From positions 29,326,001-29,390,000 of the forward strand of contig CM060734.1 of the NCBI GenBank assembly GCA_030704615.1: a stretch of DNA of 64,000 nucleotides, in the 5' to 3' direction. Positions 478-7,265 of the stretch are shown one piece after another; position 1 is the first letter of the stretch; the number at the start of each line of letters is the position of its first letter. A program made the translations under genes and the position numbers. The stretch is from Takakia lepidozioides (Eukaryota; Plantae; Bryophyta). The notes under the pieces were generated by a model, which was given only the letters and a program-made list of their open reading frames with translations, made no database searches and was not told the DNA's origin.

Positions 478-1107
478 GATGAGAGGGATGAGGAGGAAGG
501 TGGGGCAGGTCCCTCCGAAATGAGGATAGTAGTGCCCATTCCGGCTATGACAGTTGTATTGTTGTGGCTTGTCACTCAATTTGAAGAAAGTGCCGCACAA
601 TCTCAGTTGTCAAGGACTTTTGACTTGCGCATCTTCATCAAACTGTTCCGTTTTGCATGGATTATGGGAGGAAGTGCAAGTTATGAAAGCCAGATCTGGT
701 ATCCGAGAGTCCATGTTTTGCTACTCTCACAGTGGGATGGTTGAGTGTTGAGATGATCCAAGCTGAAATTTCATATACAGAGTCGCACGCAAAAGCAGCA
801 ATAGGAAAGAGTCTCCCAATGAGTTACTTCTGGCATGTACACATGCACATCGAGTAACGTACTTTTTACAGGGCAGATGGATTCGAGAAAAGGCCCACCA
901 TTGCAAACATTGTAACTTGAATTGTCTAGCTATTGCCTTGCATTCTCAACTACAACGATCTGCTGCGTTTGCAAAGCATATCTTCCATAACACTCATTGC
1001 CAAGCTAAAGCTGTCTGTAGCTGGGTGCATTTTGTGGCTTACTCCACCTCGACCCTATGCTGCGGACATGCCAACAAATGGACCACTGACCCAGGGCTTC
1101 TCTTTCA

Positions 1108-4100
1108 CTAACTCTCTCCAATGTCATCTGGGCGGGGGTGGTGCTGGAGAAGGGTATATTTGACTTTCGTACTTGGCAGATCTGAGGTCTGATCCCTCTC
1201 AAGCATGGGAATATCGGCATCAACCATGGCTTCACTATTAGCAGTAATAGCCTCCGGAGACATGCTAGGATTTTCCAGTGGACTCCCTTGATCTGCAAAA
1301 GGTGCCACTAGCCGGCACGCATTGATTGCTGTAAAAGAAGAGGAGCAGAACTCTCGCTTCCTCCGCTTCCGCTTTGGTATGGACTCTGAAAAGAGAGGGG
1401 GCCTGTCAATTGAAGCGCTGGCAGGAGCCAGGGAGTCACTGCTTGCGGCACCCTTCCCAACCCACAATTTCGAGCTACCTTTGCCCAATGAAAGTGAGTC
1501 CCCGTCAGGGCCTCGCTTGAGGGGAGGAAAGTACCGATGCTGCCGCTCTTTTGCCTCCATATCCACATGCCGACTCTGATAATGTTCGTCATCTGTCTCC
1601 TGCTCATATAATATGATGAATAAAAATATGAAAGAACTAACTCAAAGGTGTAAACTGTATTTTACCTTAAGAGCACACTGGCAGAGGAAGGTCGAGAACC
1701 TGAGATGCGTTCCAGCGACTTTCTTTTCTGCTGATCTTTCTCAACACTAAACTGCAAACAAATCTGCCTCCTAAATTATCGACAAACTATACTACCGATT
1801 GGCACTCAAGACTGAATGTAATCCAAAACCTACAACAAAATTTACCTCACACTACAAATTGGTTTGCAACACCATGACTGACTTGGCCAGCATTCCAATA
1901 TCAATCCATCCCGGCATCATTTTAAGACCAGATAGAGACTCCACAGCGATGTCCTTTTAAGTCACCACTTTCTCTGAATGACCTGCAGTTGCTGCTTCCT
2001 GCGGTCTGCTTGTGAACTGCCCATATCTTCACAGATGCTGGAGCAATAAAGCTGGTGTGGTTGACGAGTTGGTTGAAACTGCCTAAACAATGAAGTGGAG
2101 AAACATCATTGCTGGTACAGATCCTAAGAAAAACTGGCCTGTCACTTCATAAAACATTTCAAATGTGAGAGTGTGTCACGAGGAGAGCACTTCCTTCCAA
2201 AATCAACAGCCAAAATAGAAGTTCAGTCCCAACCTCATCACTGGAGTCTGCATTCCGACTTTGACCTGAGAGAGCCACATTTTCCACTAACCGCCACTGA
2301 GGGGTCTCAATGTCCACATGCCGAACTTGTTCAACATACTTGGCACCCACATTGACAGGCATCACCATGTTGTTTATGTCGTAGTCTGAGGCCCTTCTTC
2401 GTACAGGCCCAGATCCTGACACTGGCCTTGTCAGACCCCCATTAGAGGACGAGGGGGGCCCTGCAGTGGTGCCACCGGTTGAACCCCTAGGGGATGGCAA
2501 TGCAAAACTTGAAGAGGCAACTCGCTGCAGAGCTTGAGGTGCACCCCGTTGTAAGCTATGTGGCAAAGTGGATTTAGGCAGTACAAAGTAAGAAAGATTG
2601 CGATGGGGAGCTCCTCTGCTCAACTGATGCTTGGCCTTTTCCACACGTGCCTGCAGTGCTTCAATTTTCCATAGGACTTGTTCCATTGAATCTTGGCCTC
2701 CCACAGACCCATGCGCTGCTACAGGTTGCTCTTCTGCATCCTCTTCTGGTCTAATTTCAGCATTGGCAACTGTAGGAGACAAACAGTGAACAAAGATCCT
2801 CAATGACAACACTTTCAAACATGCAGTTGAAGTTAGTCATAGATCTTAATAAACTCCAAACATAGAAAAAGTGTTCCTCTACCAATGCTGTTTTCACCCT
2901 CATTGAGTACTGAATGTGAATAATGACAAATAAAAAATCTGTTCACCAGACACACACATCCAGCTCAGAGATAGTTTTCCAAAAAACAGTTGAGGAGTCT
3001 GACCCTCAATACATTCAATGTTGTTAAGTGCCCATATACAGCTCAGAGAGAAAGGCAACACAGACCCTATGAGAACAGTTGTGATAAAAAATGGATTTGT
3101 AGTGCAGTAGAGTGAATGATGACAAAACATGAGCACGGTCAGGGGCGCACAGGTGAGTTGGATTTGCTGATTTTGAAGACTATCAACCTCGCCCTCAACA
3201 CAGGCATCGTCTGACTCCTGCATCTTCTTCTTGTCTGCACAAGATACATCAAACAAAGAAGGGGATTACAGCCTGAGATGGTTAAACCTCCAGTCACATA
3301 TCACAAGACCTCTAAAGACAATAAAAAAGAGGGGCCCTTCAGCAGTCACAGCACAGATACTTACATTGCACATGCTGAAATAAACTGCACACTTGTGATC
3401 AACTAACATGATGTGCAGCAGAGCCCTGGTTACACGCACACCGTCGATTTGCTAATGCATGACAAAATTTCACAAAGCAACAATCATCCACTCAGATTTT
3501 ACCATATCCAGCACCTGTGCTGGAAAAGATAACCTTCAAGTGATGCCAGTCACTAACTGTCTCCACCCATTCTCAACATAAAGTTTATTGGTGCACTTGA
3601 AGTGCCTCAATCCAAGAAGGGATAAGGGTAGAGACAGGTAGAAGTTTCTTATGAGAATATTACGCTGTCAAATAATTTTAAACATTTACTAAAATTGCAG
3701 TAATGTTTATCCTTGAATTAAATAAATCTGCAAGGGAATCAAATGATCTATTGCTATGTCAAGCAACGAGTTCTCTGCCATAGTGGCACATCAAGAGATG
3801 TAACAGGTCCACTGAAGCTCACAGTGGCCAGTAGCAATTGTGGCTCTAAATCTTGCTGAGAATCTGGCCTACTTGAACTGGGTGTAGACATTAGAATCTC
3901 CGTCAGTACCATATCTTGAGAACAGAGGGTGCCTTGCCATAAAAGCATCCAAATCCACGGCGACCTCAACCTTTCTTCGTCGCCTACGGCGCAGGATCCG
4001 ATGCTTTCTAGGCATTTGCCTGAGAGGTACTGTTCGAGCTGCTGATCCCTCTGTGTCCTCCGGCTCCAGCTTCCAGGTCTTTCTAGCCATGATGTCCTCC

Positions 4101-7100
4101 AAAATCTTGTCATATTTGTCAGATTGTGACTGGAGCTCCTTCATTCGCAACTCTAGCCAGCGACACCTCCATTCAATCCCTCGTCTATAGGTCTTCCAGT
4201 CCACATTCAACGCCTTCTTACTCCTGGTTGAAGAGAAGATTAGTATAATTCACAATGCATGCATAATCCAGGATTCACATTACAAGACATCAGAGGAATG
4301 TTGTGATTGTAATTTGAAATCAAGACATGTGGAATTGACAAGTACCAACATTTTCATCACCTAAACATCATTCTGCAAGTATTTATGAGCCTTGACAATC
4401 AATCATTAGCCAATCACAAATTACTGGCCTGCAGATTGACAATAGCCATATCCATCAACACTACCTGTCACTTGTTCCCACAAAATCATCTTCTTGAGGA
4501 GCCAATGCTCCATTCCCATCTCGCAAATGGGATGCAATTTCACCACCTCTTTGACGTCCATCCACTCCAAGATCACCCTCACTCTCACTGTCAGAGGACT
4601 CAAATGAGCTTGAACACTCTGTTGCTTGATCCCCAGAATCGAGCCGGACATCATCGGAACTGACAGATTCAACAATCTCAACATATGTGTTTTGAAAGAA
4701 TGGATTGTTCCTGTGAGGCTCTGCCTCCTTTTCTCCATCTGCAGATTTTCCTCCTACCTCTACCTTTTCTTCCTTTAAACTGGTGTCTTTGAACCTAGCA
4801 ACAGGTGGAACAATGCACACTGTATCCTCTCCAAGCACACCCACAGACTCTTCCTGCCCTTCACCTGACGACTTTGAAAGGTAGATTGCATCCCCTTCAA
4901 TTGATCCCTCTGAGCATCCATCGACTTGTATCAAGGGTGGGTTTCTTTCAACTGGGCCAGCAACAACACCTTCCACAGCAGTTTTCACAACCTTGCCTTC
5001 TGAAAGGCTGGCTTGCTGTTCAGCAGAACCATGCCCAGCACCACCTCCTCCTTCACTTGGTGCCTCCCTCTTCAGATTTGCAACTGCAATCTCCTCTGTG
5101 GCTCTGGTTATGCCCACCAGAGTATCCCCTACTCCAGCATACTGCTCTAAGTGCTTCTTGCCTTGCCGAAGAAGATTGCTCGCAGCGCTCCATATTTTGG
5201 ATCGCTTTTGATTGTACTTCATGGCATTGTAACATATTCGCTCGAAGTCTTCCTGTAGAACAAGAACATTACAAGGATTGCAAGGAAATTTGAGATCCAA
5301 ATCAAGGATATGGAAAGAATGCCTGATAAACTATTTCTGTCAAGTCAGGACGACTTGTGCCAACTTGACCTGCCAAGTTTCTCTAGCAGCTGTCTTCCAC
5401 TTGAATGCCCTGCCAGATATTACACTTGACCAATAAGCCGGCAGGGCATTCAAGTGGAAGACAGCTGCTAGAGAAACTTGACAGTTGTCTCTCACTAATG
5501 CTTCGCACCTGGGGTTGGCTTCGGGAAAGAAACCACATCTAGCCAGACTGACAACAATGATATCGTTATAATCAACGCAAGAGACTCAAGAACCTTTTGC
5601 TCAAGTTCGAAGAAGATAAGCCGAAAAGCAAATCTAAGAAAAACTTTGTGAGATGGTTGCTTTGGGAATACCACAAACATCCGCCATGATTGGTACTGTT
5701 GGGCGAAGATCTTCTGTTGCATCATTGCAAAGCACATTGGTGTTTTAATAATCTTGGAGTAATTGGGAGCAAACGAGTCATCCACCGGGTCCACAGAAAT
5801 TCCATTTGCATCGAGACTGCTCCAACCACACAACAGCAAATTATTCACAGAAAGTATTCATGCCGGTTACATAGCTGAATCTAGCCTTCTGTTTGGTTCC
5901 TAAGCAAAATCAACATAAGACAGACTGGGAAAGCCTAGGGACTAACATGGACCCCTGATAATGTACAAGGAGTAACATCAAGAACCAAGGTAACCCCCTT
6001 CTGTGGAGGGCGACTGGTACCTTATGTGAAACAAGAGTCACAATCATCAAGAAAACACTTGCACAGAAAAAAATGTGCACCAGAATTATGAGCACTCTAC
6101 ATTTACCCTATCGCAAGTCTGGCCCAAGGAAGATCAACGAATAATCAAGACTGCTGAATGTTATCCACTGCAGAAAAATTCAAAATATGACATCTCCTTT
6201 TGACTCATGACCTTTGACCATCAACAATGTGCCATGAAGCCTGAAAAATGTAGGGCAGTCAACAAAATGTGAGCAAGAACTATGAGGTTTCAAGTGGTGT
6301 CATTCCCACAACCTTCCACGTGGTTAGTCTTGGAAGTATTGCTTGGTTTGATTCCCTAGCAAATTTGCACAAGCAAACAGATGATTGTGCAAGAACTGCT
6401 GGGCGAAGTCCAAAGACACAAGAATACTTCATCAATTCAAGGGAAATGAAGAGAGTCATACTGTAAGTACTATTGCGGTAAATCAATCCTTCTGAATAGG
6501 TTCCTTTCAGTCCAAAGTTACCTTATAAGAAATTCCAGAATACCAACCAGGCCTACTTCTCTCTGCGTGAGAGAGTCCTTTTCGGTCGCCCGCATCTCAT
6601 TTTCATTTCCAACATGGCTCTTGCTGTTCACTCCCTCGTAAGCTCCACTTGCTAAGCTGCCATTGTCATCCAACTGGTCGTGCTCACCATTCTTCTTTCC
6701 CCCTCCACTCGACTGCTCAAAGCCTGCCTTCCCTATCTTCGCTACTAACAAATGAGCCAGCACTTTCAGAGTAGTTTCTCCTGTTCAGACCCAGAGTCAT
6801 TTGCAGACTGGGTGTGAAATATGTACCCAGGCATAAGTCTTGTTTCACTCTACTTGATGGTTGAAACTTCAATGCTTAGCTTTCAAACAGTTTATCATCG
6901 GCCATCACATCCGATGCCTGACCAAAGGTACTGCCACGAAAGCCTGCTACCCAAGAGCCGCCACCCTGTAGTAAATTCAACAACTCATCCACGACGCCTA
7001 AATACTTCTACTTCCAACGGCACAACACCACGACTCAAAATACAACAATGATAACAGAACAAAGAAGCCCAAAACAAACTAAACGACACAATCCCACAAA

Positions 7101-7265
7101 AGTGGGCCAAAACAGATATCCTCATCAGTCATTTCCCTGGAAGCGACGCCGTACTTCTCTTCCGGATACACTGATACACAACTTACCTGTACCAGTCGGC
7201 CAGATTTGTATGCAAAAAATAATCGCTGTCTCAAACGCCTTTGCACGGTTGAAGGCACTTGCCAT
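1108..7265 (-). CDS. Bromodomain + KANSL1/NSL1-like (WIN motif, PEHE domain) protein. Predicted exons: 7265-7187, 6780-6522, 5816-5672, 5252-4465, 4223-3910, 3234-3151, 2769-2234, 1599-1108. Start codon and the exon-6 donor are uncertain.
   Basis: All seven introns are GT-AG with matching phases (1,2,0,2,1,1,0). Bromodomain: LDANGISVDPVDDSFAPNYSKIIKTPM...EDFERICYNAMKYN. KANSL1-like blocks: EWRCRWLELRMKEL, SAARTVPL, DYDINNMVMP...DIETPQWRLV...ETDDEHYQSRHVDMEAKER. Confidence 0.85.
5374..5480. repeat. Perfect 41-bp inverted repeat with 25-nt loop in intron 3 of the bromodomain gene
   Basis: 5374-5414 (caagtttctctagcagctgtcttccacttgaatgccctgcc) is the exact reverse complement of 5440-5480. Confidence 0.95.

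Follow-up and report, generated by a model that had tools for sequence, protein, structure and literature searches.

A gene on the minus strand of a 64,000-nt stretch of the Takakia lepidozioides genome (contig CM060734.1, positions 29,326,001 to 29,390,000; this whole stretch is referred to as the window) encodes a PEHE scaffold that carries a bromodomain and belongs to a previously unrecognised streptophyte family. The explanation that we favour, and consider probable as a whole, is a single expressed gene of seven exons whose product, of ~810 residues, is a largely disordered chromatin scaffold predicted to tether a MYST-family acetyltransferase. The PEHE domains of KANSL1 and MSL1 bind MOF (PMC6607013, PMC11658772), and the interaction with KANSL1 is required for full MOF activity (PMC6607013). 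A first-pass annotation of the locus had described a bromodomain fused to a KANSL1/NSL1-like scaffold. The fusion of bromodomain and PEHE in one transcript stands. The KANSL1 type is one candidate beside an MSL1 type; the solved PEHE chains that were matched are all from MSL1. From the sequence of the Takakia protein, KANSL1-type and MSL1-type scaffolds appear indistinguishable.

Transcript evidence was taken from contigs of two public runs (X1 and X2), which come from different studies and were aligned to the window. The two runs contain about half of the words sampled from 1100-6900, which fits the exonic fraction. The contigs support minus strand exons at ..6522, 5816-5672, 5252-4465, 4223-3910, 3234-3151, 2769-2234 and 1599... 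Every intron is GT..AG on the minus strand, and the reading frame, checked by splice phase and exon-length arithmetic, is open across all joints. All six joints are carried by one 2,482-nt contig, of which just 27 nt lie beyond the last joint; five of the six are confirmed in the second run, and the joint 1599|2234 is present in both. Counted from the ATG at 6595, the exons sum by the same arithmetic to 2,430 nt, i.e., 810 codons. Thus the bromodomain and the C-terminal exons lie within one spliced transcript, and a single gene is concluded because contigs of two studies join the exons, the introns are GT..AG and the frame is open. The parts of the gene are listed below; P0003 is a 983-residue protein of the liverwort Riccia sorocarpa with which the window exons are collinear.

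6522..6784, minus strand: first coding exon seen, with bromodomain helix Z (contigs contiguous over 6522-6900)
5672..5816, minus strand: exon encoding the ZA loop of the bromodomain, with the tyrosine of APNY (Pfam PF00439, E 7e-8; splice joints)
4465..5252, minus strand: end of the bromodomain (exon match to PF00439, E 0.009), then an acidic linker that is probably disordered
3910..4223, minus strand: coiled coil 1, WIN-like motif, basic run and FMARHPLFSRY (286 homologues at E<=1e-3)
3151..3234, minus strand: small acidic exon, 27 full codons plus shared codons (splice joints, both runs)
2234..2769, minus strand: coiled coil 2 (2621-2689) and first half of the PEHE region (BLASTP to P0003, E 1e-48)
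1111..1599, minus strand: last coding exon, with the second PEHE half at 1531-1599 (ETDDEHYQSRHVDMEAKERQHRY) and KRKRRKR at 1354-1374 (BLASTP to P0003)
1108-1110, minus strand: stop codon

The collinearity with P0003 extends over most of the gene. Window positions 5672-5815 align with residues 205-252 (E 9e-24, 71% identity), 4467-5252 with 253-474 (E 5e-36, BLASTP), 3911-4228 with 475-582 (E 5e-29, tblastn), 2234-2767 with 613-791 (E 1e-48, BLASTP) and 1111-1599 with 792-951 (E 2e-22, BLASTP). The exon order is also collinear with a single Physcomitrium protein; the orthologue in that moss is LOC112295188. That the motifs are chance resemblances, or that two adjacent genes have been misread as one, is therefore very improbable. 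It is true that a contig spanning two genes is by itself no proof of one transcript, and that the RNA nature of the runs is a guess. However the contigs of two studies contain six GT..AG joints with the frame kept at each, and the exons are collinear with single annotated two-domain proteins of liverwort, moss, lycophyte, ferns and alga. A division into separate genes fails because of the spliced contigs and the single Riccia protein. The motifs are beyond chance because of the same collinearity, and the exon with the coiled coil and the WIN-like motif has, alone, the 286 homologues noted above. At the 3′ end, an X1 contig reaches 291 nt below 1100, and the 3′ untranslated region would extend to ~810 if this contig is collinear.

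At two coding positions the contigs of both runs depart from the window: at 2604 a His codon becomes a Pro codon, in a linker, and at 6603 Glu becomes Gly. These are probably strain differences.

The bromodomain was identified by matches of Pfam PF00439 on two separate exon pieces of the window (E 7e-8 and 0.009). Both the ZA-loop tyrosine (in APNY) and the asparagine that anchors acetyl-lysine (in KYN, codon 5211-5213) are present, in agreement with the first-pass annotation, which had placed a bromodomain with an intact YN upstream of the other motifs. Orthologue bromodomains score up to E 6e-22 with the same profile. Among single-domain matches in the Protein Data Bank, the bromodomain of the Riccia orthologue is closest to BRD7 and BRD9, at E ~1e-16, with BRD1 and BRPF1 close behind; because of this order the bromodomain is classed, by similarity, as family IV and BRD7/BRD9-like.

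The PEHE segment lies towards the C-terminus and consists of the following parts.

2357-2386, minus strand: DYDINNMVMP
2291-2308, minus strand: ETPQWR
2311 to 2234, minus strand: stretch equivalent to the Pfam PEHE model, within the first half of the PEHE region and including ETPQWR
start of the exon beginning at 1599, minus strand: TDDEHYQSRHVDMEAKER

The segment in the window is split by an intron, therefore orthologues, which are stored as whole proteins, were scanned instead. The PEHE profile PF15275 matches 10 of 11 orthologue segments at E<=0.01, with values of 3.2e-8 to 7.6e-4 among ten scored singly. The best is that of Selaginella (E 3.2e-8), which scores 34.6 bits against a curated cut-off of 34, and the match in P0003 spans residues 766-814. 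Both Bromodomain and PF15275 are found in the full-length proteins of Riccia, Diphasiastrum, Physcomitrium, Ceratopteris and Spirogloea, as well as in two transcript-derived proteins. Compared with the Riccia segment in which PF15275 was matched, the two halves of the window segment show 61% and 51% identity.

A profile of the plant PEHE region (A1) was also compared with 177,635 sequences of the Protein Data Bank. The top two matches, 2y0m_B and 4dnc_D (E 0.007-0.008), are the MOF-bound PEHE chains of MSL1, and the alignment covers TPxWR, the acidic run and RHxxxE. Only these MOF-bound MSL1 fragments were found with A1; the part of PEHE that binds the MRG domain protein MSL3 is unmatched. In a language-model search a chordate PEHE cluster ranked 2, with a score of 0.86, which is a lead only, and an Atlas search with the PEHE exon of the window gave no usable match. 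Single exons compared with the Protein Data Bank gave matches to cytochrome bc1 subunit 8 and Cas9, which were rejected as chance. PEHE homology, as tested by profile, holds for the family and is limited to the MOF-binding module; the window appears to carry the same segment, divided by an intron.

The last intron is also covered by unspliced contigs, 1572-2084 in X1 and 1763-2262 in X2. If this intron is retained, the frame would stop 24 codons past ...SSDE, at a stop codon at 2159-2161. Retention would remove the second PEHE half and the C-terminal basic run, and might thereby yield an isoform that does not bind the enzyme.

Between the bromodomain and the PEHE segment are a coiled coil and a short motif resembling the WIN motif of KANSL1.

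4133-4186, minus strand: coiled coil 1, RRGIEWRCRWLELRMKEL
4022-4045, minus strand: SAARTVPL (Arg codon 4034-4036), then a run of basic residues

All peptides quoted in the first-pass annotation, i.e., the coiled-coil block, SAARTVPL with its basic residues and DYDINNMVMP/ETPQWR/TDDEHYQSRHVDMEAKER, were found on the minus strand at the positions given there. WIN peptides that have been observed bound to WDR5 are DGTCVAARTRPVLS in human KANSL1 and GSDYLCSRARPLVLSE in the fly protein; their conserved positions are the central Arg, the Arg at +2 and the Pro at +3, and the KANSL1 WIN Arg inserts into WDR5 (PMC4018492). The window sequence AARTVPL agrees with human KANSL1 AARTRPV at positions -2, -1, 0, +1 and +3, and the fly NSL1 sequence reads CSRARPL. 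In a 35-sequence alignment and profile of the coiled-coil/WIN block (A2), the WIN-like motif forms a conserved island within a variable linker. At its centre 25 of the 35 sequences have Arg and 8 have Lys, and the remaining 2 have a different residue. The Arg is kept in bryophytes, lycophytes, ferns, early-branching angiosperms (Nymphaea and Amborella) and monocots, and the zygnematophyte algae display CARTRG (Spirogloea) and SARTHR (Mesotaenium). Binding of WDR5 by the bryophyte protein is plausible.

The best-conserved part of the family is the block W..YRRGIEWRCRWLEL ... RRRRK.E..D..YM.RHPLFSRY, which has the 286 homologues at E<=1e-3. The invariant columns of A2 are W, W, R, W and R.

An acidic ATECSSSF sequence (4602-4625), followed by RDGNGA and extending to about 4510, is shared by family members as far apart as Spirogloea and the angiosperms. 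No known family is matched by this sequence, a candidate docking site for another subunit.

In the mechanism that these parts suggest, the PEHE segment would hold a MYST-family acetyltransferase, i.e., the plant HAM/MOF-like enzyme, and the bromodomain would bind acetylated histone tails. With writer and reader on one scaffold, the acetyl marks could become self-reinforcing or self-spreading. The AART motif may be a docking site for WDR5, like the KANSL1 WIN motif. We infer that the protein may work together with a MYST enzyme in an NSL-like complex.

Several observations weigh against this mechanism. PF15275 gave no match to single window exons, because the intron at 1600-2233 divides the segment. 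The orthologue matches other than that of Selaginella lie at 20-34 bits, most of them under the curated cut-off. All matches begin at position 1 of the profile and end at 44-49 of its 127 positions, and positions 48-127 were matched by none of the plant sequences scanned. In the bromodomain, the hydrophobic-shelf Phe of the ZA loop is absent. The window reads NGISVDPV, with a Ser codon TCT at 5795-5797 where Riccia, Diphasiastrum and Spirogloea have Phe, and the RNA contigs agree with the window at this codon. The substitution may weaken acetyl-lysine binding in Takakia. In the WIN-like motif, position +2 is Val where KANSL1 has the conserved Arg, and the 8 members of A2 with a central Lys are all eudicot-type sequences (xKSLPF). 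A Lys is not expected to fit the arginine pocket of WDR5; either the eudicots have lost the WDR5 contact, or the motif serves another partner. Finally, the profile A2 matches no Protein Data Bank chain, and there is no Pfam family in the coiled-coil block.

Some of these points bear on a different reading, in which the protein is a MYST-binding PEHE scaffold, but neither KANSL1-type nor NSL-like. It would be MSL1-like or belong to a third lineage that predates the KANSL1/MSL1 split, and AART would be some other short linear motif, not a WIN motif that binds WDR5. We regard this reading as rather unlikely, although it is the strongest of the alternatives. The solved PEHE chains that were matched are those of MSL1 only, and a coiled coil lies upstream of PEHE in both the plant protein and MSL1 (PMC11658772). 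The nearest named Atlas cluster is a chordate PEHE family of 638 residues. This is presumably about the length of MSL1. In addition the +2 Arg of KANSL1 is absent from the window, and in many eudicots Lys replaces the central Arg, yet the Ser-x-Pro-Phe after it stays. On the other hand, sequences ranging from zygnematophyte algae to monocots retain the A-R-T core in a linker that is otherwise variable, and Spirogloea has the +2 Arg. In the Protein Data Bank no MSL1 chain was matched by the coiled-coil profile, which gives no support for an MSL1-type coiled coil, but it should be noted that sequence matching is difficult for coiled coils. Profile positions 48-127, with the MSL3-binding part of PEHE, are undetected.

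KANSL1/NSL1 is the scaffold of the animal NSL complex, together with MOF, WDR5, KANSL2/3, MCRS1 and PHF20. It is long and mostly disordered, as is the plant protein, and in both the PEHE is near the C-terminus with an A-A-R-T-x-P-hydrophobic motif upstream. The plant protein differs in its bromodomain, in the change of the +2 WIN Arg to Val, and in the limited PEHE match (47 of 127 positions). Animal KANSL1 is not known to have a bromodomain, and the reader function of the NSL complex resides in PHF20. The homology that was found lies in PEHE, and the plant protein is at most a candidate orthologue of KANSL1. A region-restricted search from a plant homologue returned four proteins, the query and three relatives 86-89% identical to it, and no animal KANSL1.

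With MSL1, the plant PEHE aligns along the peptide crystallised on the catalytic domain of MOF (2Y0M, 4DNC), and a coiled coil lies upstream in both. The plant protein differs in its bromodomain and its WIN-like motif, the MSL3-binding part of PEHE is unmatched, and the plant coiled-coil profile has no Protein Data Bank match. In MSL1 the N-terminal coiled coil dimerises and binds the RING domain of MSL2, and the PEHE portion after the MOF-binding segment binds MSL3. BRPF1/2/3, the scaffolds of MOZ/MORF/HBO1, follow the same logic as that proposed here, i.e., a MYST scaffold with its own family IV bromodomain, with the link to a MYST enzyme a predicted one in the plant case. Their enzyme-binding module is unrelated (an EPc-like region versus PEHE), and the plant protein has no PHD or PWWP domain.

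The combination of domains is not peculiar to Takakia. The two domains are distributed in green plants as follows.

Spirogloea muscicola: bromodomain, yes; PEHE (PF15275), yes
Riccia: bromodomain, yes; PEHE, yes
Physcomitrium: bromodomain, yes; PEHE, yes
Diphasiastrum: bromodomain, yes; PEHE, yes
Ceratopteris: bromodomain, yes; PEHE, yes
Adiantum: bromodomain, yes; PEHE, no match
Welwitschia: bromodomain, weak (E 6e-4, below cut-off); PEHE, degenerate
Selaginella: bromodomain, no; PEHE, yes
angiosperms: bromodomain, no; PEHE, no Pfam match

The survey thus found both domains in an alga, a liverwort, a moss, a lycophyte and ferns. The architecture of bromodomain plus PEHE is, as judged from this distribution, ancestral to zygnematophyte algae and land plants. 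The bromodomain has been lost in Selaginella and the angiosperms, and the angiosperm PEHE is degenerate. Among ~240 listed homologues, nearly all from angiosperms and of ~450-700 residues, only P0011, a transcript-derived entry, has a precomputed Pfam domain, and none of the angiosperm-named proteins carries one. The C-terminal region of the angiosperm proteins can still be aligned to the non-seed plant PEHE region (hhalign E 2.5e-5), with TPxWR and RHxxME lost.

The Arabidopsis member of the family is AT3G59670, so named in a Hibiscus entry. The AT3G59670 family shares with the Takakia protein the coiled-coil block, ATECSSSF, coiled coil 2, DYDxxxxVMP and the C-terminal basic run. It differs in its length of ~500 residues, in having no bromodomain, in a degenerate PEHE without a Pfam match, and in a WIN-like Arg that is often Lys (in eudicots). 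AT3G59670, which carries the annotation "elongation factor" in several genomes, is a reduced orthologue within the bromodomain-PEHE family. A 2019 review of the NSL complex gives Arabidopsis counterparts for MOF, KANSL2, KANSL3, MCRS1 and WDR5, and none for KANSL1 (PMC6607013).

The angiosperm sequences raise a further alternative, namely that the PEHE-like segment is a relic that recruits no acetyltransferase in plants, and that the family acts, for example, as a bromodomain-guided transcription co-factor by way of its coiled coils. Angiosperm orthologues retain the coiled-coil block and ATECSSSF without TPxWR, RHxxME or a Pfam PEHE match, therefore the family can survive without a canonical PEHE, and the lack of an Arabidopsis KANSL1 in the 2019 review (PMC6607013) would fit as well. 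Against it, the PEHE of non-seed plants is among the best-conserved parts of the protein, as the identity between the window and Riccia over both halves indicates, and the residues aligned to the MSL1 peptide in its complex with MOF are retained. We consider a relic improbable, and less likely than the MSL1-like or third-lineage scaffold.

A scaffold that tethers a MYST enzyme, the reading that we prefer, allows a tentative evolutionary proposal, which we consider possible but less likely than not. The common ancestor of zygnematophyte algae and land plants may have had a MOF-type (NSL/MSL-like) acetyltransferase complex whose PEHE scaffold combined an acetyl-lysine reader with a docking site for WDR5, and seed plants may later have dismantled this complex. 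If this is true, the ancestral scaffold was a self-reinforcing writer-reader unit, and the loss in seed plants was stepwise, first of the bromodomain, then of the MOF-binding PEHE helix, and then, in eudicots, of the WIN arginine. AT3G59670 would then be a remnant of changed function, and there would be a histone-acetylation pathway in non-seed plants that is beyond the reach of work on Arabidopsis.

The searchable literature contained no paper that links the PEHE domain, KANSL1 or an NSL-type scaffold to plants. In the same literature AT3G59670 appears only in the gene lists of four papers, and a functional study was not found; it was cloned in a 2017 study among candidate novel transcriptional regulators. 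Family members are named "uncharacterized", "Bromo domain-containing" or "elongation factor" in databases. It should be noted that the stored Pfam annotation of P0035 already lists both domains, so that the combination is visible in databases. The family is a candidate for the KANSL1-type scaffold that is missing from the Arabidopsis list; the ancestral plant form of this scaffold would have carried a bromodomain, and the uncharacterised AT3G59670 would be its reduced descendant. The question is raised whether plants have a second MYST complex beside NuA4, on a PEHE scaffold, which is directly testable in Physcomitrium or Marchantia.

The 5′ end of the gene differs from that proposed in the first-pass annotation, which placed the ATG at 7265, in an exon 7188..7265 with its donor at 7188. 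This start is unsupported. It would require an intron from 7187 to 6781, and the contigs are unspliced over 6781-6900, i.e., they run through the needed acceptor at ~6781. The transcript extends upstream to at least 6900, and the contig remainders beyond this position, of 208 and 251 nt, would end near 7108-7151, before the proposed exon. A tblastn comparison of the N-termini of homologues with the window showed no match at 7188..7265 and no additional coding exon further upstream. The assembled transcript has an in-frame stop at 6785-6787, after which the ATG at 6593-6595 is the first in frame. A start at 6595 would leave helix Z of the bromodomain complete, and in the Ceratopteris and Spirogloea orthologues the bromodomain likewise lies within 36-63 residues of the N-terminus. 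If the transcript begins upstream of 6900, as the contigs suggest, its leader contains an ATG at 6798-6800 that opens an upstream frame of 27 codons, which closes before the ATG at 6595.

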